Shown: piece after piece, positions 16,010 to 47,498 of the stretch
Layout of the letters: each line of letters opens with the position of its first letter
How positions within the stretch are numbered: position 1 is the first letter of the stretch
Made by a program: the position numbers and the translations under genes
DNA from: Marsupella aquatica
Lineage: Eukaryota; Plantae; Marchantiophyta
Length of the DNA: 64,000 nt
Direction of reading: 5' to 3'
Assembly: GCA_973895155.1 (NCBI GenBank)
Contig: OZ316898.1
Span: 11,927,187 to 11,991,186, forward strand
Notes under the pieces: model-generated
What the model was told of the DNA's origin: nothing
Seen by the model: the letters and a program-made list of their open reading frames with translations, nothing else
The model's database searches: none

Positions 16010-17057
16010 ATACAACCTTATTACATAAAAGGATCAAACATAGTACAAAAGAACAAACAAAAGAGGGTCCAAATGGACAAAACCAAACGTAAAAGAACTG
16101 AGCAATAGGGAACCCCTAAAAACCAAGAAAGAGAAACTACAACTAAGAAGTGAGCAATAGGGAACCCCTAAAAACCATGAAATAAGAACTAAAACTAAGA
16201 AGTGAGCACTAGGGAACCCGTAAAAACCAAGAAAGAGAAACTAAAACTAACCCAAAGGGACTGAGGTTCTCATCATTCCTAGCAAATGTGGCAAAAAGCT
16301 AATGGTCTACATCAAGTGCCGAAACTAAATCGGCAAGTGGGATTGGAAACGTTCTCTAGGGGAGCGAGCCGCTGCGGGGGCACACTAGCACCCACTGTAA
16401 GAGATCAACGATAGATAGCCCGAGCTTGAGCACGCTGTAAGGTGACTGAAATGCGTTGGCGAAAGTGCGTGATCAAAACAAATAGCGGGGGCCCGGTGGG
16501 ACCCATCTGGCCATGAACATCCCGGGCAACTTGTCTAAGAAGCCCGTCAAACTGGTGATGAAGACGCCCGAATACTCAAGAGCAAGGGGGAGGAAGCTAT
16601 CAGATGAAGCTCGTGCAACATATTTGGCCTCCTTTGCTGTTTCCGCACAAGACGCTACTGCCCCTGCCATTGTTGCCGCTGTCCCAATGATGTCTTGGGC
16701 GCAATGGGTTTGCCACCACTACATCTGCCAAAGTATGTTGACCCTCACGGACCATGGTAAGATCGACCCGTAACCGTTGTGATGGAGGACCAGGTAACTT
16801 GAGTACCACCTCCCGTCGCACGCATACCAAAGAGCCTGAGAGAACCTGAGCAGTTGCACATCTCACAAAGTCGTGAACAATAATGGACACCTCTGGCATC
16901 ACAAGGCTTCCCACAAGTACAAGGAGGTAAACCAGCGAGAAATGGGTGGGGCAGCCCCATACGAAGATGCATGGTTGTCGAGAACTCCGCTGAAGACATC
17001 CGCAGATGAGAAATGACTGGATTGGCCTGAAGCCATCCTCCTGTGCCCTTCCCTCCG
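16010..17057 (-). mobile_element. 5'-truncated, decayed CRE-like non-LTR retrotransposon (Zn knuckle + restriction-like endonuclease)
   Basis: Frameshifted translation CTCGKPCDARGVH...HDFVR...RVDL...LADVVVANP...KEAKY...FLPLALE. Highly similar to the copy at 46829-47498, including the 3'UTR. Confidence 0.75.
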
Positions 17058-23075: not shown

Positions 23076-24229
23076 ACATGCTTACAGGGATTTTGGAAGG
23101 AGCTTCCCATGGGGTCTGTAAACAATCATGAATCTTAATGCCTTTGTGATTTTTTCCTTTGTGTTTTTCATGGCATTATAGGAGTCATGATGACCCCTTC
23201 AAGATCTGGATCACTTCCTTAGGAACATTCCCTCTACTTTTACGAGAGTTTGAAAAAAATAAAAATAGTTTAGGCCTTTAAGTGTAGTACCTAAGATCCT
23301 GTTTTTGCAGTATTATGGGCAATAATAGCTCTTCAAACTCGAGGTGAAGCTCTTTTTTGGGCAATATATTTGATAATGCACTCTAAAGAGGACTTTATTC
23401 TATACATATATAAAGTTTGGTTTTACTCTATTGCCAAGTACCACCAGATTATAAATTTATTGCAATTTTGATTTGTCTCATTTTTGTTACTCAAATACAC
23501 GTGCTACTATGAACACTGAACCTCCCCACTGTTGGGGGAGACCAAAGTGGTGGATTTCTAGCATAACTGCCCTCCACCTTACTACTGTACTACACTTAAC
23601 CAGCCCCAGCCTCGGAAAATGGATTGGGCCAGTGGAGTGCCAGACTGCCAGTGGAGTTCCAGCTCAACTGCCTGGTTACCAAAAAAAAGGGTTGGAAAAG
23701 TTTCACCTGCGCAGGTAGGGAAGATTGTAAACTACCTCCGTTTAACTTAGTCCCTCCAACACCATTGACCCAAGACTATTGGTCAATTTGCACTATCCAA
23801 CAACCTTCACTTCTGCCAATAATAATTGAGTCATTCTAATACCGTGGACTGAAGGACATTGGTTGTTCCACACAATATATCAAACAGCAGCTAAGGAATC
23901 CAATTGGGCACAACTCCTCCAATCCAATTGAGTAAGCTGGACCCATGGCATTATTTAACTGTAGAAAATCTTCGGATTGTCTTTCCATTTTAGCGGCAGA
24001 GTTGCAGAAAGCTTGAAAACAGAGGCTTCGTTGTATGATTTGAGTTCTTTCTTGTTGTTCTTGTACGAGATACGCTCTTCTCAAAGAAAATGATTATGAA
24101 GCTACTTCTCGAAGAAAGTGATCATGAAGCTTCCAATCAAGACGGCTGCCACTGCCACTGCCACTGCCAAGCCCGGTTTGACCTTGCCCGTCAAACTGGG
24201 CGTTTGAGAGCGGCAAATTGACAACCCGG

Positions 24230-24803
24230 CACCCGGGTTCGGAAGCAGTCCGGGAAAGGAAACGTCCGGTTCGGGGTTCGGGTTCGGGAGGAGGTTCGGG
24301 TGGGGGTCCGGGTGACTAATCGGGTCCGGGTCCGGGGCGGAGGCGCTCGGTGGGGGCTCGGGGTGGGGTCCGGGTGGGGTTCGGGGTGGGGTCCGGGTGC
24401 GGCTCGGGTCCGGGAGGAGGAGGTACGGGGGGTTCGGGTGGGGGTCCGGGTGGGGTTCGGGTCCGGGTCCGAGGGGTTCGGGTGCGCTCGGTGGGGGTTC
24501 GGGGTGGGGTTCGGGTCCGGGAGGCCGGGGTGGGTCCGGGTGGGGATCGGGGTTCGGGGTCCGGTTCGGGGTTCGGGATTGAGGCTCGGAGAATTAGGGT
24601 TTCGCGATTTAGGGTTGGAGGATGGGGCCGGTCGGGAAAGGGTCGGGGGCTCGGGAGAGGATAAAAGGAGGAGATCCCTCCTCCCCCTCCTCATTTTCGG
24701 TTTTGCAGAAAGGAGGAGAGGAGGAGAGGAGGAGGAGGAGGAGGAGGAGAGGAGGAGAGGAGGAAGAGGAGGAGGAGGAGGAGAAGAGGAGGAGGAGGAG
24801 GAG
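24230..24803 (+). repeat. G-rich subterminal microrepeats (GGGTTCGG/GGGTCCGG) and a GGA tract at the left end of the hAT
   Basis: Dozens of GGG-containing 6-12-bp units, with TTAGGG motifs, then (GGA)n at ~24715-24803. Confidence 0.9.
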
Positions 24804-24890
24804 GTAAGTGTTTGGTTTTGGTTTTTATTTTTGATTTTTGGTTTGTTTTGTGATTTTTTAAGTTTTCTTTGTGTTTTAAACCCTAACCTT

Positions 24891-25255
24891 AGAGCCAAAT
24901 GGAGGGATATAAAGAAACACTTGTACGCGCACGCTTTGAGCCTCGGTTCGGTTTGCGATACTCCGTACAAGAATTTCTTAATATCACCTTAACAATTTAG
25001 TCTCCTTTGTTCATTAAGTAAAACATTTGCGGAGATAGAGGAATCCATGTACGCATGCTTAGAGTTTCGGCTCGGTCTGCGATACTTTGCATGGATACCA
25101 CGATTCGCCGAGAATGTTTTTACTTGAATTACAAATGAGTGTTAAGTTATAGACACCAAATCACATATGTCGAAGCAGGAATATAACAACTTTGAAAGAA
25201 AAGAACACTTTTGTGCGCATGCTTTGAGCGTCCGCTCGGTCTGCGATATTTCACA
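24891..25255. repeat. Left subterminal inverted repeat of the hAT (partner at ~34335-34705)
   Basis: Three copies of gca(t/c)gctt(t/a)gag..tcg(g)ctcggtctgcgata on the left (~24925, 25050, 25215) are mirrored by tatcgcagaccgagcc..gctcaaagcat-like copies at ~34345, 34510 and 34640. Confidence 0.85.
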
Positions 25256-25475
25256 AGTGTTGTCTTTCTCTTTTATTGTTGTTATATAGAAAGGTAATTA
25301 AAATCATGTGTGCAATAAAAATACATAATGCATGGGAGAAACAAACCGGGAAAAGATAATAACAATACGACTTGTAATTTTCAGGTTGGTCGTTGAATCC
25401 TTATTGGAAGGATTTTATTTAAATCCCGATAAGATCTTGTTCCTCCCTCACATATTCCTTTTGTGAAGGGAAAAC

Positions 25476-27077
25476 ATGGTCATCGAAAATTTTAGTTTAG
25501 AGTATAGGCAAGTGTTGGAGATGATCACAAAACATGTGAATGAAGGATATGAGCCGAATCTTGTTGCTCTGGATGCATTGAAGAACGCTCGAAACACTCT
25601 CGAACATGCTAGGAATTCTAGCAAAGTGGCCGGGAAACGAAAACGGAAGGGGGCAAACGAAGAAGCAAAACAGGTTCGACACAATGTGGTAGTGTCGATA
25701 TGGAAAGAGATACTTTATCGCTACACTCAACCGAAACAGTATGGGGTGGACGGGTTCGAGAGGGAGTTCACAAGACACGGAGAGAAAGGATACAAGAACT
25801 TTCTTGGTGAGATAACCCGTTGTATGCGGGAAAGTGTACAAAAGGAGGACAATTTCACACGAGAGCAAATGAAGTCATTTGAAGATGAAACTGAGAAACC
25901 GGGAGGATTTCTGGAAAATTTGGCACTCAACTTGGAGAAGCATGTTTGGGATAATTTGGCAGCCAAAGTGGAAGAGGGTGACACTACATTGCTTGGAAAC
26001 CCCGGGATGTACACACACAAGAGAGAATTGCTAGTGAAGTGGAGTAAGGAGTTGGCAATGGCGAAATCTGATAGCAATGTCAAATATGCTAACGAGATTG
26101 TGCACTTTGGGGATGTCAGCATCAAAAGTGCTCGAAAAGGAACACGTCCATCGCGTGTAGTTCCAGAGGTTAGGAGTATCCATTTTCTTAAACCTGAGCA
26201 AGTGCACAACACACGTCGCATTGGGAAAGGAATCCAAGGAGAGGTATACACTTGTCGTATATTACATTGTTCTCTCATTCCCGTCAACGTGACCTTAGTC
26301 GCAAAGCGGTTCAAGGATGGGGACAAGCATAAGAGATGAACTGACGCATTACAAGAAGTGCTTATGGGAGGACTGAATCATAAGGGAATCGTTGGAGCTC
26401 TTGCGTTGACTATTGAGGATCCGCCAAAACTTATTTACGATCACTATAATGGAGGTGACTTGGGTAGCTTTATTGATAAGTGCGGCATATCGTCAAAGAG
26501 CAAGGGGAAGGCACAGATCACGACGGACCTTGATTTCAAGTTTATTTCGGAGAAGAAACTCTTGTTGGAGAACCGGTTGGGAATCGTCTTGGCTTTGCTG
26601 GAGACACTGCAATACTTGCATGAGCATGATCGATTTCATTGTGATCTTCACTTTGGAAACATCCTTCTTCATTTCGATCACAAGCACGATGTGGCTATTA
26701 AGGTGTATGTTGGTTTATGTGATTTTGGCTTGTCTAAGCATAAATCACAGTGCAAATTACCAGCTAATCGGATGTGGCCCACAGCAACAGAAAAAGCAGC
26801 AACATACCAAAAACAATTTCCACAGTTGGCTCCGGAGCTTGTTCAACCTACCCCTGTCGAGTTTAGTGAAAGTACCGATATATATGCTTTGGGGAATATT
26901 TTTGAGACATTGTTGATAGAGAATTGGGATGGAATGTCTAAGGGTTCACGGTTTTTGGGGAGGGGTTGGAGTGCACAAGTGCATGGCCCCAAATTGGATG
27001 TCATAATCCGTGAAATGATGGCCACGGATGCCAAGAAAAGAATGGATTGTGCTTTTTGGAGTTTGAAGATAGTTTGA
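25476..27077 (+). pseudogene. Transposon-borne protein kinase (TKL-like) with an in-frame TGA at 26337
   Basis: ORFs 25476-26339 and 26358-27077 are in the same frame. Motifs IGKGIQGEVY, VAKRF, HCDLHFGNILL, DFGL, APE and DIYALG. The frame continues upstream through another TGA (25464) to an acceptor at 25384. Confidence 0.88.
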
Positions 27078-27267
27078 ACGTTTCCAGATTGCACATTGTA
27101 TTTGCACAACAGTCCATATCTTAGAGATTAAAGATTAGGGTTTACACAATTTTGTAAAGGTCACCTTAACGATTATATGTTTATTCATTGTATGTCAATT
27201 ACAATGTTCTGCATTTTGTTGATAATATTCTATCAAACTTTGTCGTGAATGCCCAAAATTGTGCTAA

Positions 27268-29277
27268 ATGTGTTTGTACATTGTCAAATATCGCAGACCT
27301 TTTGTACACATCGCAAACATGGGACGATGGGAATTGTCTTCTGATGATGAAGACAAAGAGTTCACGACACAACATCTTACCATGCAAGATGGTCAAGGAT
27401 CCTATTGTGACGATGAAGCTCTTCGTAATAATGTGTTGGATAATCTTACAACCATTGGCATTCACTATGAGGCTAAACCCAAGGTTGATGGAACACCGGC
27501 GCCAAACACAAGAAGATGGGAAGATGAGGGTATGAAGGATGAATGGAGTATATTAACGCCCAATGTAAATCCTCCCCATGACGAATGGGCCATGAATGCA
27601 AAGGAATTGGAGATGTTGATGCCAAAGAAAGACTTTTGGCCATTAGCACAACAAATTTTTCACGATCTGGATCTTTGGGCAACAAGATCATGGGCGCAAG
27701 AAAAATTCACCATGTCCAAAGTAACACATGCAGGTGTTAAATCACATTGGCAGCAACGATATCGAGAGTTTGCTCCACACAAAGCCCAAACGAAAATGAG
27801 TTCCATTTACCCTCCTTTTATCCGATGTCTGATTGCTGAATTCATTCTCAAGTGGAAGGTGGATTACCGTTGGGAAAACAGTGCTGGCAAGCTGACTCAT
27901 CAGGTGCATCCATCAGTGGTTGCGATTGCAACGAATAGGAATACAACTATTACAAAGGACCCTTCAATGGAGACTTCCAACAAGGGATCCAAAAGAAAGC
28001 TAGATGACACTGGGGAGGGATATGCGCATGAGAAGGGGAAAGCGGCTGTACTTCCTCGAGTCTCCATGCCTGACCGTGCAGCACCACCAACCAATGTGGA
28101 GTCAACGCACACCAAAAAACCAATCCTTGTAGGTGTTGGGAGTAGAACTCCACATGCAAAGAACAACAATGTTACTGATGCTAACAAGGATAAGTTCAAC
28201 CTGCACAACATATGCAAGAGCTTGGGGGCAGATGTTGCAGAGGTGATTGAGACAAATCTCCGCACGAAGTATGTAGTGGAGCTATGTGAATGTGGTAGCA
28301 TCGAAAAGTTCAAGTCACAATTGCAACAAGCTGATATAAAGATGAGATCACTTGAGAAGAAGCAGAACGAGCTGACGACCAATTCTGAAGTGATGTTGTA
28401 CAAGTGTCAATTGTTTGACAAGATGGAAGAAATCAATAAGCTGACAAAACAACTTGCTGAAAAAGAGCGTCAATGCAATGAACTGGCACGACTTGAGGAG
28501 AAGGACAAGATCATTAATGATCTTAAAAGTGAACTTGCAATGCAAGCAATCATCATATCAAATCTTCACGAAGAGGTGCAAGAATTTAACAATGGTGCTT
28601 TGGGGATGAGGTCAAACAAAGGGCAAGGTGAATTATCGTCGCCAAATTTTGTTAACATGCAAATCATAGATCCTACAGGGCACAGCAATCTTTTTCCAGA
28701 TGTGGAGGTTGACGCGGAAGGTATTGATAGGTTTTTTTAATAGTGGAAAAAGGATGAAACTATGGCAACATTTGTTCGTGAAAAGGATGACAAGTGTACT
28801 TGGTGCCTATATCCTTGGGGCCCTCAATCTGTTTCCATGTTGGGAACCTGCGGTCATATATGGCATCATGCTTGCTTGTCTAAATGGTTGAAGAAAAGCC
28901 AAAAATGTTGGTGTCGCACACCATTTCATGAACGCGAGTATGAGCAACGAGGATTGTTGAAGCAAATGCCATCAATGGAGACTCAACAAAACACTGAAGA
29001 TATGACTGAAGATATGACTGAAGATACTATACCGGCGATGCAAATAGATGAAACTCCCATTGAACATTTCACAATCAATGAATATAATTTGTCAGATGGG
29101 GAATTTGACAGGTTGTTATTCAGTGGTCGACTCGATGAGTGGAAACAATATGCGGCAGCCAACCAGCCATCAATAGATGAGCAAAATTTGCAACGATCCA
29201 TTCGGCGCCATCGACGATGTCAACAACAGGCAGAGGTGAAAACAGAAGCTGTTGACAATAACAACAAAAGGAACTAA
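27268..29277 (+). pseudogene. Transposon-borne coiled-coil + RING-finger protein (putative E3 ligase), interrupted by in-frame TAA-TAG at 28738-28743
   Basis: ORFs 27268-28740 and 28762-29277 are in the same frame. Heptad-rich segment KSQLQQADIKMRSLEKKQNEL..., then CTWC...TCGHIWHHACLSKWL...CWCR (RING-H2-like). Confidence 0.75.
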
Positions 29278-29782
29278 AACCAATAGTCTCTACATTTTGA
29301 TGTTATTTTCATGTAGTTACTATTAGAGACATTTTGTTAAAATAGAAGCGGCATATCCTCTTTGACAATTATTTTCAACTTGTAATTGGTAAAGAGATTT
29401 TGGAGTGACATTACATTGCATATCTCGTTGAGTACATATATTTTTCATTGGGGGCATGGCGTCGCCTTTTGGAGAATGTGTATTTTCGTAAGAATATTCC
29501 ATCCTACAATCAGCCATAGGTTTTGGAGGCATATTGTCGGGCTCACAATCATATTTTTGGACAAGTATGAGGAAAATAGACGTGATGAGAGATGGTAGCA
29601 CAGTGGACTCAGGTACTGATCCTTCTCTGAAATCATTTCCAAAAGGAGATCGTGTAGCACAATGAGTTCAACAAAGTCAACATCGCAATGGTTTTAGCCG
29701 CCCAAGTTGAGAATGATTTTGTAGAAGGATGTATACCTAAGTCCACTCACTTTTCCTGTCTTTCATAATTTTTTCCGCTATT

Positions 29783-31110
29783 GCTGCTACGGCCAATGAC
29801 ATTCATGCACATGCGAACCGAGGCCAACGCCTACTCCTTTGCCCACCGCAAAAATGGGCCCTCATTACAACTTGAAGTTGAACGGAGTTTATTTGAGTAC
29901 GAGAGAAGTTCTGAAAGCAAATGCACTCTCAGGTCAAATTTTCAGGTCCTTCGAGCAAAAAATTACTGAGTATGTCATCGATCCGTTGGTTTCACAACTT
30001 CTCTCGTACTCAAATAAACTCTGTTCAACTTCAAGTAGCGTAGCTGCTATGACCAATGACATTCATGCGCATGCAAACCGAGGCCAACGCCTCTACATTT
30101 GCCTACCCCAAAAATGGGCCCTGATTAGAACTTGAAGTTGAACAGAGTTTTTTTCATTATGAGAAGGTTTATTCAAGCAATGGCACTCTCAGGTCAATAT
30201 TTCAGGTCCTCCTGACTTTGTTATTATTGAATATGTCCGTGCTCCGTTGCTTGAATAAATCTTCTGATAATGAAATGAACTGACCAATTACTGGAGTACG
30301 GCTGCTACGGCCTATGACATTAATTCGCACAATTGCATGTTTATATCCTCTCCTTTCCGAATTCCAATTCGAGCTTGGACATCCTCTCGTCAGCTGGTCT
30401 CCACCATTGCAGTTGCTCTTCACGCAAACCAAGATAGCAGTCTCTAGAATCCTCGAACCTATTTTATTTCAATGCATCATTCATAGTGTTTGAGGAATCC
30501 AGAGGTTCGCGTGAGGAGCAACTGAAAGGGTGGAGACCTGCTGACGAGAGGGTGTCCAAACTCGAATTGGAATTCGGACAGGAGAGGATATAAACGGGTG
30601 AACTTTGACTTGAAATTGGTGACTGTATTTTGCGTCTGCATATCAATTTGGTGATTGATCTTGCGGAATCCCCGTGACCGTGTCTGATCATCATCATGAC
30701 ATTGCTCTCCTTGGCCACCAATGGGCCCTCATTACAACTTCAAGTTGAACGGGGTTTATATGATTATGAGAAGGTTACTGATTATGTAGGCGATGTGTTC
30801 ATTTCACAACTTCTCTCATAGTCATATAAACTCTGCCCAACTTCAAGTAGTGCAGCTGCTACGGTCAACGACATTCACCCACCCCAAAAATGGGCCCTCA
30901 TTACAACTTCAAGTTCAACTAAGTTTATTTTATTACGAGAAGGTTTATTCAAGCAATGACATTCTCAGGTCCAATAATGAGGTCCTCTCGACCTCATTAT
31001 TATTGAATATGACGGTGCTCTATTGCTGGACTAAATCTTCGCATAGTGAAATGAACTAACCAATTAATGGAGGGGGCTGGTATGGACTACAGCTGCTATG
31101 GCCAACAACA
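29783..31110. repeat. Array of ~260-bp units, each with a long fold-back hairpin (putative ncRNA/small-RNA precursors)
   Basis: Leader GCTGCTA(C/T)G(G/A)CCAATGACATT-like at 29783, 30043, 30301, 30855 and 31092. Hairpins at 29870-30036, 30152-30275, 30339-30595, 30737-30848, and a degenerate one at ~30930-31050. Confidence 0.85.
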
Positions 31111-31344
31111 AGGTACTTTGAAATAGTCAGTGTTGGAGATTTGGAAAACATGTTGCGTTGGTGTGTCTCTATGACATTCTCAAATGCAAATACAAATAAA
31201 TTATTCAATCATTGTACAATAATAAACACACTGCAAGATAATACAATCATGTTACAAAAAATATAATTGTTTATAATTTTGTCTATGTCAGATACGACAA
31301 TATAAGAGTAGCAACACTTGATATTATCCTAATGAAAAGATGCT

Positions 31345-34250
31345 TCAAGGCTGTGAAGAGAAATTTCGTGCATTGTTGTTAAGATTTTTGCACAAAAGCG
31401 CATTCCACTCGTCTTGTTTGTCGCCCCAACTGAGTGGATCACGATTGTGTGACTGAACATTGTGCGATGTTTCTTGAAATGATGATATTCCTCGAAACCC
31501 ACCAAGGCCAATAGGCCTGTTCGACGTATATGGATTCATGACACTTGGCCCTGCATACGCATTCAAGGGTGGACCTGCATGGTGTTGCCAGTTTGCATGT
31601 GGGTCGTTTGAAGTTTGACCTTCATGATTGTTGTATCCATGAAAAAAGGTTGATGTCCTTCCATTCATCGGATGCCCTGCTGTGCCTATGCGTTGCTCGT
31701 TGAAATATGGTCTGCTTGTGTCAACATCATTCGCAAAGTTCGACCAAGGTGACCTTGGTTGGGAAGGCATCACAAAGTTTCTGTCCAGTGATGCATCTTC
31801 CTCGTCTTGGATTTGCGATTCATCAATTGTAGGATACATCTCCAAATCCATTTCATTCTCCCATTCCTCTGCAGCAATGATGTCTGTATCTGGTGGAATA
31901 CGAGTCAAGAACTCACTATCCTTATCCAATGAAAATCCGTGTAGCAATTCATCAGCATCATCAATTGTATCATAATCTTCGACATCTTTTTCACCAAGAG
32001 CCGCACGTGTTGCATCGTACTCTTCATTGGTGCACAACTCCATGGAGATAGGTCTAGGTCCATCATTTGTTCTTCTTCTTTGGTCATAACGTTCATATAT
32101 AAACGTATGCGGGTTTTGAACATTTGTGAGCCCTTTCTCTACCCTCATGTTTGTAAATACAAACACCAAATCTTTTGCTCGATCATTTGTCAATCGATTG
32201 CGACTTTTGGAATGTATAAATCCATACGAACTCCAGTTTCGCTCGCAAGCTGATGCACACACTTTTTGGTGTAAGATTCTTCGCGCCAGGATTCTCAAAT
32301 GTTTATAATCTGCACCATACGCATGCCACCACTCTGCTGGACTGACATTACCTATACTTGATTGGGCGGCTCCCATCGCTATTGATGTGTTGGGATTTTT
32401 TTTTTGGGCGTCAATGGCTTGACTGTGGATGGCAGAAATAAGTTCTCTGACGTCGCGATCACGGTTGATCCCCTCCTTCACCTGTTGTTCTGAATATCTA
32501 GCAATGTATTCACTGAAACCCCTATAGAGTTCTGGATCTCCAGCGACATCTATGTCCTCATCAAAAAACATTTGGGGATTGAGATATGCTGCCACTAGCA
32601 TGAAATCAGTGGTAAGAGATTTTTTCGATCCAAATACACTTTTAGTATCTTTGGTTTCAATACCTCTGTTACCAATGGACAATCCTCCATGCTTGCTTTC
32701 AAAACATCAATCCCTCTTTTCAAACTCCAATACAACCAACCTGATTGCGGAGAATCACCATCAAATTCTCGCAACATCTTGACCAACGGAGTAAAGAATT
32801 TAACTGTATCCTTCACTTCAACCCAAAATGTATCTTGCTGTATCCACATTTTAAGTTCGTCTGCCTTTCCCCTCGTCATGTGTCCAGCTGATTTTGGTCG
32901 CAATGGAAGTCTATCACGATAAGACTGCCAATTATCATCAATGACCATCTGTTGTAAAGCTCCTCTTAGCTCCAACGCTCTTTGTGCCATTAGGAAATTA
33001 GTCGCAAATCTAGTTGCATTTGGATTCAATAGTTTTTTGTCAGGAGATTTTCTTGCAAATATTGCAGAAAGCTTTTGCGATGATGAAACTGCTTTTACTA
33101 TCCACCTCAACCGCTTAAAAATCTTTTAGAATGGATTCTGTCCAGCATCATCTAGCACTACACGCTTGTGACCACACATATCCTCTAGCAGCAAATTAAA
33201 CACGTGGGCAGCACACCAGCTCCAAGTGACATGAGGATACTTTTTCATGACTACCTCACAACCTGCTACGCGACTTGCGGGTGCTCCATCAGTTACAATT
33301 TGAATAATATGATCTGCACCAATATCCTCAATGTATTTCAACCACATGTTGCCAAGATATTTCCCATCTTTCTTGTCAGCTTGCGTAGCATTCCAACTAT
33401 CCAAGAAGAAGTCACCTTTAGAAGTCAACAACATGACATTCATCAAAGGTTCTCTTCGGACGTTTTCCCATCCATCTGAAGAAAGAGAATACCCATAAGG
33501 TTTTGCCTCCTTTAAAGTTTGCGTCATGTCCTTTGTGAGATCCTCCTTACTGTCTTCCAATAATTTCAATCGCAAACTTCGCATCGTAGGTAGAGAATAA
33601 CCATTGACAATCCCTTTTGAAGTCTCTATGACTGCTTCTCGAAAAAAAGGATTATTTGAAATATTGAATGGAATACCACTGGTGTAGAAAGCTTTCGCCC
33701 AAAGCTTATCCAAATTTGTTCTATTTGGAATTTGATAGGCATCCATAATTGGGTTAGGAAGATTTACTGGCCTATCTCCTTCCCTTACATGTGTATCATC
33801 CATGTCAACATAGTTTGACCCTCGTGTGGATGCTTGCGAATATGAACTTCCAACGCTTGGCCTACGACCTCTCACATCCCGCAAGATATGACTTCCATCT
33901 CGTCGTTTGTACTTTAAGGTCGGTGGAACCTTTATCACATTGTACATAATGTTGATGGCATCCAAATCGACGACACCATAGAGTTGCATGCAAGGGGGCG
34001 CATCCCCTTTTTGGATGTTTCCCATCAAATGCGCCTTTGCTCGTGTTGCATGATGAGTAACGTATGTTAAACAATACTTGCATCTTCGATAGATACGATT
34101 GATATCATGACATGTTGAAGGCGCATCACATCGTTCAAAATATCTCCACACTGGAGATTGTTTTGAAGGGTGTTCTTGCACACGAGTTGGACCAGGTCTG
34201 GGAGTAGTGGAATGATATCCAGTTTCATGCGAATCCTCTTCATCGGACAT
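31345..34250 (-). pseudogene. hAT transposase (BED finger, DUF659-type core, C-terminal dimerization domain) with one nonsense codon and one frameshift
   Basis: ATG at 34250. Motifs VWRYF..CKYC..RAKAHL, SSDGW, IIQIVTDGA, WCAAHVFNLLLED, NATRFATNF, AAYLNP and EWW..YG..LARRIL..SACERNWS. In-frame TAA at 33126 and a frameshift in the A run near 32620. Confidence 0.93.
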
Positions 34251-34824
34251 TGTTACGACTCTCAATGGTAAAAAAATAAAAGGGTTGATTCTTTTGATTT
34301 TGTGAATATAACAAATATAGTACAATGGGTTACTTTCCTGAATTATCGCAGATTGGGCCTAAGCTCAAAGCATACGCAGGAAAGTTTCCCAAATTCTTAT
34401 ATTTGTCAACATCCCTACTTCAACCTATGTTATGTAATATCTATAACTTCACAATAGTTTATCTTTGAAGTGAACATATGTACGAGAAATCGTGATACCC
34501 ATATGAAATGTCATAGACCGAGCCAAAGCTCTAAGCATATGCACATGGGTATCTCTTTACTCGCAAGTAGTTCACTTTCAAACAAAACAATGATGCAAAG
34601 TTGTTAAGGCGATATAAGGAACTTCTCGTATGAATTATCGCAGACCGAGCCGAGCTCAAAGCATGCGCGTACAAGAGTTCCAATGTATCCCTCCGATCTC
34701 TCCCTAATGCTAAACCACAAGAGAGAGAAACACAATGAGACTTTGGATTAGTGAAATGAATTAGTTATTCCTACTTATACTAAATCATCTACTTCTTATC
34801 CTCTCTTAAAACTCTTAATCTTTG

Positions 34825-35405
34825 ATCCTAACCCTAATTGCGCCTCCCTTAACCCTAATCTCGCTCCCCTAACCCTAATCCCGCCCCTAACTCTTCCCCG
34901 GCCGCCAATTCCCGAGCCCCGTCCCCGAACCCCGCACCCCGTTCCCCGAACCCCGTTCCCCGCATCCCCGCATCCCCGAACCCCCTACCCGAACCCCCTT
35001 CCCCGAACCCCCTACCTCGTTCCCCGAACCCCGTTCCCCGAATCCCCGAATCCCGGCCCCCCTTTCCCGCCCCCCCTTCCCCGGTTCCCCGAATCCTCTT
35101 CCCCGAATGCCCCCCGTCCCCGGTTCCCCGAATCCCGTCCCCCGGGCCCCCTTTACCCCGGCCGGCCCCGGAAGGGTCCGGGGAGGGTTCGGGTGGGGGT
35201 CCGGGGAGGGTCCGGGAAAGGCCCGAGAGTCCGGGGAATGTTCGGGGGAGGGTCCGGCGAGGTTCCGGGAAAGGCCAGGGAGGGTCCGGGGAGGGTCCGG
35301 GAAGGGCCCGGGAGTCCGGGTTCGGGTCAGGGGGAGTTCGGGTTCAGGTCCGGGGTGCTCGGGAGGTGTTCGCGAAAGGTCCGGGGAAGTCGGGGTTCGT
35401 TCGGG
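34825..35405. repeat. Right hAT terminal region: AACCCTAA motifs, a C-rich CCCCGAA block, then a G-rich GGTCCGGG block
   Basis: Direct inspection; broadly mirrors the left end. Confidence 0.85.
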
Positions 35406-35528
35406 AGAATCTTCAGAAATATACGTCAAATTGCGTGTTTTCGGGTCGTCATTTGACGATTTGACGTGCCCGACAAGGCGTCAAGGTGCCCGTCAGATTA
35501 AACCGGGCTGCCAAGGTCTCGATCTCTG

Positions 35529-38500
35529 ATGGGTACATCAGCAGCTGCATCAATTGTCCTCTCGCAGTTGACCGTTCCCGTCCCTCGACTAGTCATCCAT
35601 CACTATCACCCCTTCCTCCCCCGGCGTTCACTAATACTCTCTCGAAAACCTCTATGGAAAAGCCCCTGCCTCCCAGCTGCGATTTCGGTGCACATTAGTA
35701 ATTTGAGACCTGCCCGGAGGTGCCCATTCATCGCTCGAGCCAAAGTGGTGGTCGCAGAGACGATGCTTTCGTCGAATGCTTCACCAAAGCAGCACCAGAA
35801 GCAGCAGGAGGAATATCAGCATTATGATCTCCCCTCCACGGAATTGGGATACTTTCAAGACATGTTCGCGTTGCGATCGAAAGCAACTTTCCTAGCTCTT
35901 GTTCAGGTAATTGAAATTTTTGTCTCCGTGGAAGCTCTGAATTTGCAGACTTGGAGAAGTCTGTGCAAGAAACAACGATGTGGCTGTGGAGGAAAGTAGA
36001 TGCATTGAGATTGCTAATATTTGTATTGCTACTCGATTTCCCGAGATCCCTTCTGTTAATTCTAATGTGGACACCAGGGTTGCAATTCGGGAGAGACGCA
36101 GCCTCCTAATACTCCCCGCACTAATTCACAAATCAAAACATCACAGCGTGGATCATCAGCGGTAGACTTTATCGGGGTCTGATTAAGTCTTTTTCTGAAT
36201 TCGTGCTGGTGAATTGCCAGCTCTAATGGAGTCAGGCATGACACGTTGAACACAAGCAGATGAGCATGTTATGTTTGAGTTTGGACCAATCATCGTGTCC
36301 CTTTCAACGTGACTGTCATGAAGACTCTTTTCAATGTCTACACGCTATCTGTCTCTCCTCGTGATAACATATGTACATATGACACTGTCAAGGACTTGGG
36401 AATTTGCGTAATTAGAGGCGCTGTGTGGATGACATTTGATTTGATTTTTTAACCCTTTTCAGTTGAGATGTTACTGAAACGGAACAGCTGATCGAACTCT
36501 TGAATTCCGCAAGGGTCTAATATTCTTCTTTTTGGGCAAATCTAGGAAGGCGATCGATTGGCAGTGGTCGTTGACCGCACCGTTCTGTATCCTCAAGGTG
36601 GCGGTCAGCCTTGCGACACTGGCTACATCTCCACCGTGGATGAGAAAATCAAATTCTGTGTGGAGGATGTGCGCGCAAAGAATGGACTTGTCAGTCTTAT
36701 CCCTAGTCCTATCAGTTTGTTTGACAAAGGATGAAGACAAGGGTTTTAAAGTACAGTAGAGGATTAATAAGCACAGTTTTGTTCTGTCCAGCTGTGAAAT
36801 CTAGGTCAGATAATCTAGTGATGTGCATTTCGCGTTCAATGCCCCTTTATTTTGATTCCAAGTCATATCAATCGATTTACCAGGTGTGAGTAAAATGTCT
36901 CAACCCTCAAATTGAGCAACAGGACGGATTGTGATGGTTCGTCTCAGGAATCTATAAAATATTATTTCCGTTTATCGATAGCATTTACAGTATGAGCCTG
37001 CAATGTGGCTCGGAGAGAGCAGATCGTCTGAAAGTCAATTAATTCCTTTTAGAATCCCTAATGAGCCAAGCCGTAACCTTGGGTTCTATAGTTTAGATGA
37101 GCAGATCTGCAGGAGCTTGATTTCTTGTCTTTAAGACATGGCTGTAACGAAAGATTCTACCAAGCATTGATCAAACGCTCATGCTGTTATCGCAGGTGTA
37201 TCATTATGGAAAGTTTGAGTCTTCTGAGGACACTTCCTTTCAGATAGGGCAAGAAGTACTGCTAACTGTTGATGATTCTCGGCGGTCACAGAGCTCGAGG
37301 TTCTTGAGCCTACCTCGTCATGTCATGGTGCTTTCATCATAGGATTCATTACATCTGCTTTTTTCAAGCCAGAGCCTGGGGAAGCTAAGTGTCGCATAAA
37401 GGTGTCATATGCATTGGATCTGCAGTTTGAGTCATGAAGCCTGGTGTATGCTTTTTCTTTAATCAATTAACACGAGCTTTGTGAGTTATGTTTCAGAGAA
37501 AGACATTTTGAAAGCAATCCCAGGTTATGCAAAAGTATCTATGGGATGGCAAAAAAGTCTCGAGGTTTCATGTCAGCAGATGGAAATTTGCTTTAGGTAC
37601 TAACTTTACCTGGAATTGTCTTTGCAGGTTACACTCAGCTGGACATTTGCTAGATGCGTGTATGAAAACTATTGGTTTAGTTACTTTCGAGCCAGCAAAG
37701 GGGCATCACTTTCCAGATAGGTATGGTAATCTGGACGTACATGTAGTATTTTCTGGATTAAGAACGGGGTGACTTTTCGATGTTTGCATTATCAGCCTCA
37801 GGTTCTATCGTTGGTGCAAGGGAGTTCACTCATTTCAGTGTTTCAGGGTTCCTGGACTATAAGACTCTCTCGAATTGATATTGTGATGGTAGAAGGGTTA
37901 TCATGCACACAGGAGTAGAGCAATGGGTTTATCTTTAATCAAATTCTTCAGACTCTGCTTATAATACATGTGCAGCCCCTTCGTGGAGTACAAGGGTACT
38001 ATTCCAGCTTCAGATATTGAGAAGAAGCGTGCTGAATTGGAAGTAGAAGCGAATCGATTAGTCACAATGGGCGGTTCGGTACGTGCATCTGACATGTTTC
38101 ACCAAAATTAATTGTTTTAACTCGCAGCACCGACCGTGAAAGTCTGGTCACTGTACTTTTTCGGTTGCATAGCCCAGAAAAGCAGAGTTTATGTGCTGTC
38201 CTCTGTGGTGAGCCCATAAGTCACCGGGCATTGGGACGCAGACTTGACGTCCAATCAACCATCGGAATAACAGAACGCACGGAATGCCATGATTTGAAAG
38301 AGCTGTCCGGTTTGCAGGTTCAAGCTGTTGTAGCACCTTACGAAGAAGCTGCTAATTTATGTGGCGGGAATCTTCCAGACTACATAGCTAAGGTTGGCTT
38401 CTGGATATGACACTCACCTTTGTTCTCGGTATTACTCACCTACTATAGAGAGACTACCTTTTCATTATCCGGAATTCTATTTTTGTATACCGGAATTCAT

Positions 38501-41879: not shown

Positions 41880-43225
41880 TCGGGACGTCCAAGATGTCGT
41901 TAAGAGAAAAGATGTCATGATGCCCAAGATGTCGTTAAGAGAAAAATGTCGTGTCACCCAAGATGTTGTTTAAGAGAAAAAATGTAGTAAAGATAAAAGA
42001 TGTCGTTAAGAGAAAAGATGTCATGTCGCGATGTCATTGAGACAAAATATGTCACTACGCCCTCGACTACGCCCAAGATGTCGTTAACAGAAAAGATGTT
42101 GTTAAGTATAAAGTTGTTGTTAAGTAGAAAATGGTCCATAAGTAAAGTGATGTTTGTTAGCATACATGTAATCAAGTCTCTGTTGCACAAAAGATGTTGT
42201 TGCGTAAAAACATCCTTGCATTTACAATATTGTTAAACCGCGCATCTGGGTATAAGGGGCTTGGCGTAACGCGGAGTCCCCATACAAAATGTATCCAGCC
42301 AGCGAAAAGACGGGCTACGCAGCAGCACCTCCCCTCCACCATCCGATTGACACTCATAGCTGCACCCACCCTCAGCCATAGGATGTGATCTATGGCTCAA
42401 ATCGTAGGTCTCGTTGAGATCTACGTCTCCAAAAAATCTCACCCAAAATGGTTTATTATTTCAAGAGAAATGATGGAAAAAAGAATGGTGCGCTCTGATT
42501 GGCTGGATTCAAAACTTGAATTTTGGGGGGAAGATTGATCTAAGCCGTCTGATTGTTTTGCCTCCACAAATCTCATGCGGTCATCATATTGGCCAATCTA
42601 TGGCTCATAAGAAAGACCTCAAGGAGATCTATGGATGGGTTTTTTTCGTTTTGTAAATGGGTTGATATTTCTCAAGTGAAAAATAAAACAAATCTAAGCT
42701 CTCCTGGCCGTCGATTTGTTTATTTTGCAATCTCTGCTGTTCATTGTTTATTGCATCTTAAAATCTTGTCCGTCCATGTTAGAAGGTGATCTAGGGTGCA
42801 AAAGAAAGATCTCAAAGAGATCTACAGCAGGGTATTTTCGGTTTCAAAAATGAGTAAATAGTTTTTACAAGGAAATTTAGTGAACTTTGGAGTTTTGAGC
42901 CATCCCTCCTGCCCGATCCTGGATTTCCCTGCGCCCTGCCCAACATTTATGGCCGTACAGTACCAGGCTCCTTTATATATACTGATGCGTGGTTTAAATA
43001 AAAGATATCATTAAGTAAAATATGTGGTTGCTCGAAAGATGTCATTGCGCAAAAGACGTAGTTTACTAAAAGATATCGTTCGGTGAAAGACATCAATGCG
43101 TAATAGATGACGTTGTGCTAAAGATGTAGTTGAAAAATATCATAGTGCAAAATATCTTTGTTAGAAAGATCTCATTGGCTGCGTAAAAAAAATTGTCGAG
43201 TGAAAGATGTCATGAGGCAAAAACC
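41880..43225. repeat. Degenerate 18-bp minisatellite (aaagatgtcgttaagaga), split by a TIR element
   Basis: Units at 41880-42230 and 42998-43225. Confidence 0.75.
42237..42993. mobile_element. Non-autonomous 757-bp TIR element flanked by TTAA
   Basis: TTAA|ACCGCGCATCTG ... CTGATGCGTGGT|TTAA (TSD at 42233-42236 and 42994-42997). Imperfect ~30-bp TIR; removing the element restores the minisatellite pattern. Confidence 0.7.
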
Positions 43226-43375
43226 ACCACCAAAGTACAACAAAATGAGAATAATTTTTTAAATAATTTTTGTAATTTATATCTTTAAAAACCTTCCTTC
43301 TTTTTCACTATTTTTCTTGTCTTGTCTTTGTCTCATTGATTAGGTTGTGCACTATTTTCTTTATTATGTAAAATA

Positions 43376-44520
43376 CTAGCCCCATGCCCGTGCGTTGCAC
43401 GAAAGACTTCACGTGAGGGCAAGATGTCGAGGAGAGGGCAAGATGTCAAGGAGAGGGCAAGATTTCAAGGAGAGGGCAAGATGTTGAGGTGAGGGCAAGA
43501 TGTCCAGTAGAGGGCAAGATGTCGAGGCGAGGGCAAGATGTGAGATGATGGTAAGATGTCAAGGTGAGGGCAAGATGTGAAGGTGATGGTAAGATGTCGA
43601 GGAGAGGGCAAGATGTCGAGGTGAGGGCAAGATGTCAAGGTGAGGGTAAGATTTTGAGGCGAGGCAAACATGGTTGTGCATTGCCAACATATAATTCAGG
43701 CAAAAAGTCAAACAGATTAATACAAAAGTGATACAATCTTTATTCAACGCGTTCAATAAAGAACCTCATCATATACAACATTTTTTGTCAACCTTGCTTC
43801 AGTTACCCTCCTCGGAATCCGAAAGGAAAACCTTGGTAGTTGTAGAAGATGTTGCCCTTGAAAATGCCACACACAATTGTCCGTGACTAAATACAGGCTT
43901 TGAAAGTTGTAACCCTACATGTTCTAAAGTCTGACCTTGAACCTTGTTTATGGTCATTGCATATGCCACTTGAATGAGAATTTGGACCCTACATAATAAA
44001 AAAGGAAGTAATTTGCCAGATGTCCACGGAATCTGTGGGATAAATGTAAGGGTCCTTGCATGCTTTCCTGCAAGAACTCGTGCCTCAATGACACGATGAT
44101 TCATTGCTCTCACAATTAGCAGAGAACCGTTACACAACCCCAAAGAGTGATCTATAATCCAAAGTAAAATGATAGGGCATCCAACCTTCATTGTACCAAC
44201 TTATGAGGCAACAAACCACTCGACGTGAGTGTTTCAAGAACTCCGTAGGGTAGAAATTCTCCTCTTCGAACTGGTCCGGACGATCAACACTAAAAAACTC
44301 CCTAGATATCTGAGTCCTTCTAAGATATCTGAGTCATTAATTTTTAGTGCCTCGTCATTTGTCAGCGCCAGGGTAGTTCTTTCACTTAAGAACCTGTCGT
44401 CCACAGGAGCAAGAGATGGGTAAATTCCATGAATCAATGATTCCACACATCCTCCATCCACCACCTTAGACTCAAGGCAAGTAAAAAGATTATTTGAAGG
44501 CGAGGCAGACAAACCAATGA
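43376..44520 (-). mobile_element. Helitron 3' remnant with decayed PIF1-like helicase
   Basis: Helicase motifs GLCNG, YAMTINKVQGQTL and VFSHGQLCVAFSRAT (43799-44191) plus TLALTND. The 3' end has the hairpin CGTGCAACGCACG followed by CTAG|T at 43376-43379. Confidence 0.9.
43415..43662. repeat. 18-bp minisatellite (gagggcaagatgtcgagg) in the Helitron subterminus
   Basis: About 13 tandem units. Confidence 0.9.
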
Positions 44521-44633
44521 ACAGCCCTTAAAAGACGTCAAAAACTCCAATGGCCATGGATGACTCCCGCCCTCAGCTCATTTTGTAAATGGACAAAAGG
44601 CAAAAAAAGGCGGCATCGGTTATTATAGTGTTA

Positions 44634-45150
44634 GATAGCTCAATGCCCATGCCTTGCACATAATATGTCAAGGTGAGAAAAAAAGAGGTTGAGGAGAGAA
44701 AAAGATGTCAAGGAGAAGACAATGTGTTGAGGTGAGATAAGATGTCAAGGAGAGAAAAATATTGAGGTGAGCAAAAGATGTCAAGGAGATGAAAAGATGT
44801 TGAGAAAAGAAAAGATGTCAAGGTGAACAAAAGATGTCAAGGAAAAGAAAAGATGTTGAGGTGAGCAAATGATGTGAAGGAGATCGAGAAAAGATGTGAA
44901 GGTCAGCAAGCGATGTTGAGGAGAGGAAAAGATGCCAAGGAAGGAAAACATGTCAAGGAGAGAAAACGATGTCCACGTGAGAAATATATGTCAAAGTGAG
45001 GAAAAAACATGTCAAGGTGACAGAGGACAAAACATGTCAGGGAGAGAAAAGTCGTCGAGATGAGAAAAAGATGTCAAGATGAGACAAAGACATCAAGGTG
45101 AAAGAAGATGTCATGGGAGGCAAAGATGACAAAGGTAAAATATGTAAGAT
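44634..45150. repeat. Older related 18-bp minisatellite following a degenerate second Helitron 3' end
   Basis: atagctcaatgcccatgccttgcac resembles ctagccccatgcccgtgcgttgcac at 43376, and is followed by many aaagatgtcaaggagaga-like units. Confidence 0.65.
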
Positions 45151-46828: not shown

Positions 46829-47498
46829 ACTTTGGCAGATGTAGTGGTGGCAAACCCATTGCGCCAAGACATCATTGGGACAGCGGCAACAACGGCAGGG
46901 GCAACAACATCACGAGCAGCACAAACGAAGGAGGCCAAATATGCTGCACGAGCTTCATCTGATAGCTTCCTGCCCCTTGCTCTTGAGATATTTGGGCGTC
47001 TTCATCATCAGTTCGACGGGCTTCTTCGCCAAGCTGCTCGGGATGTTCACGGCCGGATGGGTCCCACCGGGCCCCCGCTATCTGTTTTGACCACGCACTT
47101 TCGCCAACGCATTTCAGTCACCTTACAGCGTGCTCAAGCTCGGGCCGTCTATCGTCGATCTCTGACAGTGGGTGCTAGTGTGACTCCGCAGCGGCTAGCC
47201 CCCCTAGAGGACATTCCTGTCCCACTTGCCGATCTAGTTTCGACACTTGATGTAGACCACTAGCTTGTAGCCACATTTGCTAGGTATGATGAGGACCTCG
47301 GTCCATTTGCGGTAGTTTTAGTTACTCTTTCTTGGTTTTTAGGGGTTTCCTTTTGCTCACTTCTTTTAGTTCCTCTTTTTTGGTTTTTAGGGTTTCCTTT
47401 TGCTCACTTCTTTTGCATTTGGTTTTGTCCACTTGGGACCTCTCTTGTTTATTCTTTTGTACTCTATTTGGCCTTTTTCTGTATGAAGTATGTGTATA
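46829..47498 (+). mobile_element. 5'-truncated CRE-like non-LTR retrotransposon (endonuclease C-terminus + 3'UTR)
   Basis: Perfect 16-bp TSD CTCTCCAAATGTGAAT at 46813-46828 and 47499-47514. Intact frame LADVVVANP...KEAKY...FLPLALEIFG...QRISVTLQRAQA. Confidence 0.85.

Follow-up and report, generated by a model that had tools for sequence, protein, structure and literature searches.

The window, the whole 64-kb stretch of liverwort DNA analysed here, contains an 11.3-kb hAT-type element at 24172-35507 that carries a protein kinase gene and a coiled-coil/RING gene (cc-RING) together with its transposase gene. It very probably belongs to a leafy-liverwort family of three-gene hAT DNA transposons, as a copy that inserted recently and has since lost its activity. 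The kinase and RING genes are very probably accessory genes of the element itself, co-inherited with the transposase and under purifying selection across lineages and species. For the whole explanation, in which this identity is combined with the nuclear mechanism set out below, we put the probability at roughly 0.7.

Ends of the element and their repeats

The element is framed by an exact 8-bp TSD: the identical 8-mer CTGCCAAG lies directly beyond both termini, at 24164-24171 on the left and at 35508-35515 on the right (neither with a strand), and the right copy sits 14 nt upstream of an ATG, that of an ORF at 35529. The left TIR (24172-24181, plus strand) opens with CCCGGTTT at 24172-24179 and diverges later; its inverted match, AAACCGGG, forms the right terminus on the minus strand at 35500-35507. 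The two agree at 8 of 8 positions, or at 10 of 10 when part of the TSD is counted. An 8-bp TSD, short TIRs and a C-terminal dimerisation domain in the transposase are the features of hAT membership found here, and they bear out the first-pass annotation, which had proposed an 11.3-kb hAT bounded by TSD and TIRs. Left termini homologous to the CCCGGTTT end are present at two Calypogeia fissa loci (L003 and L004); the comparison covers left ends, the right end of L004 lying beyond the fetched locus. The CCCGGTTT-type motif is absent verbatim from the C. fissa loci, where diverged versions are present.

Element-specific repeats extend about 1 kb inside each end, and the subterminal regions share a long inverted similarity in which 24450-25253 pairs with 34339-35011. 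The 64-kb window has 38 copies of GGTYCGGG, every one no more than ~600 nt from one or other end of the element. Twenty-three copies, followed by an (AGG)n run, make up a G-rich field at 24172-24810 on the plus strand (GC 57%, GC skew +0.39), where they are candidate transposase-binding sites; the remaining 15, as the motif or its complement, lie in the right field at 34901-35507 (minus strand). A second tier of repeat units, GCGCAYGCTTTGAGC...GGTCTGCGATA, stands in three copies upstream of the kinase gene (24885-25290, plus strand) and, mirrored, upstream of the transposase gene (34339-34694, minus strand; inverted pairs I2, I7, I8, I15, I16, I18 and I23). Because the same units precede both gene sets, the cargo genes and the transposase gene may be co-regulated. 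Such units also precede the kinase in C. fissa L001-L005, and the region 24885-25290 has the deepest coverage of the whole stretch in sequencing runs X3 and X5.

Gene content and state of the window copy

The transposase gene is read inward from the right end, and the kinase and cc-RING genes are read inward from the left; Pfam domains and strands thus agree with the convergent arrangement described at first pass. The transposase gene (31345-34250, minus strand) is intronless and spans about 965 codons. On that strand, DUF659 (PF04937, E 1.5e-30) matches over the segment characteristic of plant hAT transposases, a putative site of the RNase-H-like (DDE) catalytic core with its insertion domain, and the C-terminal dimerisation domain Dimer_Tnp_hAT (PF05699) matches with E 6e-11 and 42 bits against a cut-off of 21.4. 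Pfam gave no zf-BED match at E<=0.1; a CxxC...H...H motif (CKYC...HHATRAKAH) was spotted by eye. A long low-complexity C-terminal tail extends beyond the dimerisation domain.

The kinase gene (25476-27077, plus strand) is a single intronless frame of 533 codons. Its product combines an N-terminal helical domain bearing a KRKRK motif with a kinase domain that matches Pkinase at 26358-27077 on the plus strand (E 9e-13), and PK_Tyr_Ser-Thr as well. The motifs of that domain (G-loop, VAK, E, HCDLHFGN, DFG, APE), catalytic ones included, are conserved across the alignment. AF2 models a kinase fold with confidence (pLDDT 79); its best Foldseek matches are Roco4, FGFR and LIMK (E ~2e-12 for Roco4 and FGFR). 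Motifs and modelled fold together place the protein, predicted to be catalytically complete, in the eukaryotic protein kinase superfamily. The family itself is tiny, divergent and remote from host kinases, with 79 matches at E<=1e-3 among 1.84 billion representative proteins, and the exhaustive search of this set returned no close host parent. A PDB sequence search gave marginal matches only (best E 6e-4), and a fold search of BFVD returned viral kinases of a generic type, without particular affinity to any.

The cc-RING gene (27319-29277, plus strand) is likewise intronless and occupies one frame of about 650 codons, which encodes a conserved N-domain, a KGSKRK motif, a coiled coil, a RING-H2 domain and a conserved tail. 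The earlier reading of coiled coil and RING as two ORFs does not hold: they form one gene, whose frame is unbroken in P0017, L001 and L007 and is split in the window by TAA TAG at 28738-28743; contigs from the sequencing runs have GAT AAG there. The Pfam match to zf-RING_2 (28762-29277, plus strand) scores 27.8 bits (cut-off 27.3). Each of the eight zinc ligands of the C3H2C3 pattern is kept in the window, L001, L004, L007 and P0017, the last pair being CxC rather than CxxC, and the product is a RING-H2 ubiquitin-ligase-like protein with putative E3 activity. Its AF2 model (pLDDT 43) is too poor for a fold search, and an ESM Atlas search with the N-domain gave no usable match. A complex prediction for the L007 kinase and the cc-RING N-region scored 0.00, which gives no verdict either way. 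Since the KRKRK and KGSKRK motifs are conserved, both proteins may be located in the nucleus.

All three genes are broken in the window copy, by four stop codons and one frameshift. An in-frame TGA at 26337-26339 interrupts the kinase, where relatives read CGA; in the transposase, compared with L004, the frame meets a stop at 33126-33128 and shifts by -1 at the A-run 32620-32625, which lacks one nucleotide. The window copy is therefore not autonomous. For the RING gene, the one open to this check, the lesion is confined to the window copy.

Conservation across copies and species

The order of kinase, cc-RING, spacer and opposite-strand transposase recurs at C. fissa L004, which is complete, at C. 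fissa L001 and on the Logan contig L007. The last is more distant, with an intact kinase (546 aa), an intact cc-RING (624 aa) and a convergent transposase tail. Identity to the window drops in parallel across all three genes, L001 and L004 being closer than L007, which fits joint descent. The genes are single intronless frames in all copies, and private stops are scattered among them.

Against C. fissa, dN/dS is 0.10-0.17 for the kinase domain and 0.15-0.24 for the kinase N-domain, 0.38-0.44 for the coiled-coil part of cc-RING and 0.23 for its RING part. The cargo (0.10-0.44) is thus as low as the transposase (0.18-0.48), and these values, which answer the first-pass call for a dN/dS check, point to purifying selection on the cargo. 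Kinase dS is 1.0-1.2 where the other genes give 0.5-0.8, roughly a twofold difference, and so the kinase part may share only some of its history with them.

The family is young and has multiple copies. Near-identical contigs from two organisms (runs X1 and X3) cover cargo and ends at ~12-14x and ~5-6x, respectively, relative to flank depth, cargo depth being similar to that of the element ends, and they depart from the window sequence at 19 of 3630 positions (~0.5%). No intact member of the window copy's subfamily was observed directly, and none of the RNA sequencing runs holds the window stretch.

The spacer between the convergent RING and transposase genes holds a hairpin array (29783-31110, no strand). 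Its presence had been reported at first pass and is confirmed: four related units with a period of ~170-260 nt are accompanied by one unrelated hairpin with 92-nt arms (30339-30595), arms measure 35-92 nt with 76-94% complementarity, and the MFE of the array is -574 kcal/mol. The C. fissa copies have arrays at the equal position, unrelated in sequence to the window's, and L007 has none. Sensitive blastn found no similarity between window and C. fissa hairpins, nor any elsewhere in the window, and the best Rfam match of the region, the miRNA family MIR7533, reached 81.6 bits against a gathering threshold of 230, with the remaining matches lower. The array evolves fast and is probably not essential to the module. 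The first-pass annotation had grouped hairpins, kinase and RING gene as one dedicated accessory module; the kinase-RING-transposase order is conserved in L004, L001 and L007, and the two genes are constrained, but the hairpin array, its sequence unrelated or missing, is not a conserved part.

Possible roles of the cargo and known systems

The first-pass annotation had offered anti-silencing, host manipulation, toxin-antidote drive and small RNA as roles, all of them conjectural. The kinase and RING E3 may act as a nuclear counter-defence or counter-silencing pair, a mechanism that we propose tentatively. On expression of an intact copy, both proteins would enter the nucleus, where a host factor, for example a silencing, chromatin or DNA-repair protein, would be phosphorylated and ubiquitinated; its modification would favour transposition, making the two genes a counter-defence module. 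That such a host target exists is suggested by analogy with other transposon accessory genes (PMC12730594; PMC13547354).

Further loci bear on how tightly the cargo is tied to hAT elements. Two in C. fissa (L002 and L005) have the kinase without RING or hAT transposase, so the kinase-RING pair is not obligatory. Their kinase cassette lies beside a DUF6729 ORF, and that of L011 beside a P-element-like ORF, a label that comes from an Atlas match and is a lead; Pfam and PDB searches gave no classification for the ORFs of L002/L005 and L011. L002 and L005 were also considered as simple deletion derivatives, a reading that was dropped because other ORFs come after the kinase; it may still apply to L003. 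A broader and rather doubtful proposal is that the divergent kinase, partnered here by a RING E3, serves liverwort transposons as a mobile cassette for counter-defence that is swapped among unrelated superfamilies (hAT, DUF6729-type and P-element-like), disabling a host silencing or repair factor through phosphorylation-dependent ubiquitination.

These loci also weigh on the strongest rival, in which kinase and RING E3 would leave host defence alone and target the transposase or transpososome of the element itself, controlling how active it is, its entry into the nucleus or how fast it turns over, for instance limiting copy number or timing transposition. Co-inheritance of the cargo with the transposase gene, the upstream repeats that they have in common, the NLS-like motifs on both accessory proteins and the low-complexity transposase tail, a possible substrate, all suit such self-regulation. 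The kinase cassette, however, also rides with non-hAT gene sets (L002/L005, L011), which argues that the target is not one particular transposase, and we consider this reading unlikely.

Considerably less probable is a selfish addiction or drive (toxin-antidote) module, or a host-beneficial cargo, for which the hAT would be the vehicle. Retention of two enzymes as a pair under selection would be in keeping with it, as would a fungal precedent: kinase domains are present in the Spok drive genes, which travel on the giant Enterprise transposon (PMC8092012). Pfam and PDB searches, however, gave no similarity to Spok or known toxins, copies decay through private stops as ordinary transposon copies do, and transposition alone accounts for the amplification of the family.

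Least credible, and largely refuted, is passive capture of host genes or fragments (Pack-type transduplication) or of a separate nested element: plant DNA transposons commonly take up host fragments, and kinase dS is unlike that of the other genes, but the ORFs are full-length and intronless, with their order kept in three divergent lineages, dN/dS is 0.1-0.44, the exhaustive protein search found no close host parent, no TIRs lie inside the element around the cargo, and cargo depth equals end depth. Constrained, conserved cargo without a close host parent therefore argues for a dedicated accessory module, neither host scraps nor a nested insertion; the first-pass annotation had already set it apart from Pack-type scraps, and the cargo is not specific to this copy, since it recurs in C. 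fissa and L007. Pack-MULEs also have non-transposase coding sequence within transposon ends, but theirs consists of pieces of host genes that can be identified, mostly chimeric and under weak constraint, whereas the liverwort ORFs are full-length, strongly constrained and conserved across species.

Among classical plant hATs, Ac/Ds and Tam3 resemble the liverwort element in their 8-bp TSD, short TIRs, subterminal repeat arrays at both ends, hAT dimerisation domain and insertion beside a gene start. They measure ~3-5 kb, with one gene and CAG/TAG-type ends, whereas the liverwort element is 11.3 kb long, ends in CCCGGTTT and has three genes, two of them enzyme-type accessory genes convergent with the transposase. 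Fungal DNA transposons, including hAT7, carry TET/JBP dioxygenase genes, and in IS3EU elements an alpha-kinase gene runs towards the transposase gene (PMC12730594). The liverwort element shares with these a conserved enzyme gene inside the TIRs and, with IS3EU, kinase and transposase genes that face each other; it differs in the kingdom of its host, liverworts instead of fungi, and in its enzymes, since a divergent eukaryotic-type kinase and a RING-H2 protein take the place of TET/JBP or an alpha-kinase. Occurrence of one accessory gene across several superfamilies, as with TET/JBP, is in liverworts a lead (L002/L005, L011).

To our knowledge, VANC of VANDAL is the only well-studied counter-silencing factor that a plant transposon encodes and that acts on the host. 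VANC is an anti-silencing DNA-binding protein encoded by VANDAL21/Hiun, an Arabidopsis MULE of the Mutator superfamily (cited in PMC13547354). VANDAL21/Hiun is likewise a plant DNA transposon with ORFs besides the transposase, and the liverwort module may work similarly, but the superfamilies differ, and VANC is no enzyme pair and has no sequence relation to the liverwort cargo. Our literature search turned up no report of a hAT that carries kinase and RING genes; a three-gene layout retained by selection across several copies and species is, as far as that search reaches, without precedent among plant hATs.

The hAT element is the textbook one-gene cut-and-paste transposon. A hAT family selected across species and recently amplified to many near-identical copies, with a kinase and an E3-like RING protein, points to a new form of host interference, by enzymatic protein modification. 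It also supplies a concrete protein pair in a plant lineage where Marchantia serves as a tractable model. Should the kinase cassette truly be exchanged across superfamilies, plants would have an equivalent of the fungal TET/JBP genes.

Boundaries, repeats, and copy number of the element

The insertion at 24172-35507 is bounded by a target site duplication (TSD) and terminal inverted repeats, as the first-pass annotation had proposed: the exact 8-mer CTGCCAAG immediately flanks both ends (24164-24171 and 35508-35515), and the element starts with CCCGGTTT and ends with AAACCGGG. TSD, termini, and domains assign it to the hAT superfamily. It lies 14 nt upstream of an ATG (ORF at 35529), with an enoyl-CoA-hydratase-like gene upstream of the site. 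For about 1 kb inward from each end, the two sides resemble each other in inverted orientation. These regions comprise an outer subterminal field of short G-rich repeats at both ends (all 38 copies of GGTYCGGG in the 64-kb window fall within ~600 nt of the element ends) and inner, longer repeat units at 24885-25290, mirrored at 34339-34694, just upstream of the 2 inward-facing gene sets. The 24885-25290 units reach depths of 4275 in sequencing run X3 and 1150 in run X5, far above the remaining element (~20-50 elsewhere in X5), so numerous other elements, or short derivatives, must carry them too.

Near-identical element contigs occur at word depths of ~183-229 in run X1 (flank, 16) and ~360-413 in X3 (flank, 66-89), contig depth being a rough guide only to copy number; in both runs, the cargo (the kinase and coiled-coil/RING-H2, or cc-RING, genes) has a depth similar to that of the element ends. 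Over 3630 positions, the long X1 pieces show 19 differences from the window, and X5, a third organism, holds copies at 85-95% identity. The family is young and multi-copy.

Other repeats surround the element. A 380-nt inverted repeat pair (16197-16574 and 46989-47365; 88-91% identity), 30 kb apart around the hAT and neighboring genes, adjoins at each arm a tandem repeat with a unit of ~50 nt; the arms are probably 2 dispersed copies of another repeat family. Several long tandem arrays with 18-19-nt and 35-37-nt units (for example, GTGAGGGCAAGATGTCGAG and ATGTCAAGGAGAAG) lie within a purine-rich stretch at 41889-45132.

Three intronless genes, all broken in the window copy

Pfam places 4 domains in the element, protein kinase and RING-H2 finger on the plus strand and DUF659 and hAT C-terminal dimerisation on the minus strand, and frame reading yields 3 genes, each intronless. 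Broken ORFs were searched piecewise, stops were read through as X solely for the tree, and spliced models were not used. The kinase gene (25476-27077, plus strand) is a single frame of 533 codons, broken by a TGA at 26337, a position at which 8 relatives encode Arg or Gln (4 of the 8 with CGA). The “coiled-coil” and “RING” ORFs, formerly taken as separate, are one gene (27319-29277, plus strand): the junction, TAA TAG in the window, reads through without a break (..FFDKW..) in JGI protein P0017, the Calypogeia fissa locus L001, and the Logan contig L007. At 28738-28741, the entire X1 contig depth and at least most of the X3 depth support GAT AAG, so the double stop is private to the window copy. 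These paired stops (28738-28743) arose through 3 substitutions within 4 bases (GATAAG to TAATAG), an unusual cluster at only ~0.5% divergence; a micro-conversion or assembly artefact could account for it. The transposase gene (34250-31345, minus strand), encoding both minus-strand domains, has a stop at 33126-33128 and, relative to C. fissa locus L004, lacks one A from the run at 32620-32625. With stops or a frameshift in each, the window copy is therefore dead in all 3 genes, and it is not autonomous.

Conservation of the cargo and nature of its proteins

The closest kinase relatives are unnamed proteins of C. fissa, a leafy liverwort, and short metagenome and Logan contigs. The window comes from a species closely related to, though distinct from, that of the C. 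fissa assembly. L004 carries the full order: kinase, cc-RING, a ~4.4 kb spacer with hairpins, and the transposase on the opposite strand; L001 matches it as far as the transposase C-terminal part. The far more divergent L007 (5.4 kb; 30-59% amino acid identity) holds an intact kinase (546 aa), an intact cc-RING (624 aa), a plain 500-nt spacer, and a convergent hAT transposase tail, and the JGI contig L006 holds the kinase ORF and the start of the cc-RING ORF. Identity declines in parallel across relatives for all 3 genes. The proposed kinase-RING-hairpin-transposase order thus holds for the genes but not for the hairpins, which L007 lacks. The window array is real, with 4 related units and a further hairpin, unrelated to them, whose arms are 92 nt long; the arrays at the equivalent position in L001 and L004 are related to each other and unrelated to it, and Rfam scores for the region fall far under every threshold. 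We read the array as a palindromic repeat that evolves quickly in the spacer separating the convergent genes, not as a conserved component; it may be a source of small RNA.

dN/dS of the cargo, which the first-pass annotation suggested computing, is 0.10-0.44 when the window is compared with C. fissa copies (Nei-Gojobori): 0.10-0.17 for the kinase domain, 0.15-0.24 for the kinase N-domain, 0.38-0.44 for the coiled-coil part, and 0.23 for the RING part; the transposase gives 0.18-0.48. Single copies have differing, scattered stops and few frameshifts. Together, these values and stops fit the usual pattern in which active lineages are under selection and copies decay neutrally once inserted. Kinase dS (1.0-1.2 for 25476-27077) is about twice that of cc-RING and transposase (0.5-0.8 for 27319-34250), which suggests either that lineages of the element have recombined or exchanged the kinase cassette or that the substitution regime differs.

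The kinase is very far from ordinary host kinases, since an exhaustive phmmer search of the family protein P0001 (403 aa) against 1.84 billion representatives gave 79 matches at E<=1e-3 (9 at E<=1e-30) and the top match among PDB sequences has an E of 6e-4. Its catalytic motifs are complete (GKGxQGxV, VAK, alphaC Glu, HCDLHFGN, DFG, APE), and its N-terminal domain bears a KRKRK motif. In the AF2 model (pLDDT 79), the N-domain is entirely helical and the kinase domain has the canonical fold, nearest to TKL/TK-type folds such as Roco4, FGFR, and LIMK (15-21% identity); a viral structure search returned generic kinase matches only. The RING finger keeps all 8 zinc ligands, with a final CxC pair. 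Elsewhere the protein carries a KGSKRK motif and a coiled coil, its tail is strongly conserved, and its N-domain, for which an Atlas search found no match, is conserved as well; the AF2 model of this protein is poor.

Relatives of the kinase occur in other settings. In C. fissa L002:7073-15474 and L005:10001-15700, a more divergent lineage (45-59% amino acid identity) precedes, on the same strand, a DUF6729 ORF and a 679-aa ORF, the latter nearest among named relatives to hypothetical proteins that are multi-copy in the orchid Platanthera zijinensis (46-47%); cc-RING and hAT transposase are absent there, and 1.18-kb inverted repeats, 99% identical, enclose the L002 block. These loci are probably a different transposon type with the same kinase cassette and upstream repeat units. 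On the JGI 3300047329 contig (L011:30-4683), a relative with 35% identity precedes 3 same-strand ORFs, the last resembling P-element/THAP9-type transposases (ESM Atlas score 0.94; Pfam and PDB give no support), a lead that a second or third superfamily may carry the kinase family.

Putative role and precedents

The element is a hAT with 2 selected, apparently catalytically competent accessory genes. Their basic motifs would place both proteins in the nucleus, and the shared upstream units would co-regulate the cargo with the transposase; prediction of a kinase-RING complex returned no verdict. Tentatively (probability about 0.4), the accessory proteins would act on a host nuclear factor and so favor transposition. 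That they instead regulate the element's own transposase is unlikely, and a drive or addiction module is more doubtful still. Passive capture or nesting is highly improbable: the repeat search of the window found no inverted repeats around the cargo block, which has no termini of its own.

The element is not Pack-type, and the earlier contrast with host scraps stands, given only 79 family matches and the kinase's distance from host kinases. For the architecture, the nearest precedents are of two kinds: fungal transposons that carry TET/JBP genes (hAT7 among them), and IS3EU elements, in which an alpha-kinase gene converges on the transposase (PMC12730594). Among plant systems, VANC of VANDAL21 comes closest to the function that is putative here. 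The words kinase and RING are absent from an Arabidopsis atlas of transposon products (PMC13547354), and full-text literature searches found no description of a hAT with this arrangement. We rate the kinase and RING arrangement as new for hAT elements, within an already known practice of transposons carrying accessory enzyme genes.
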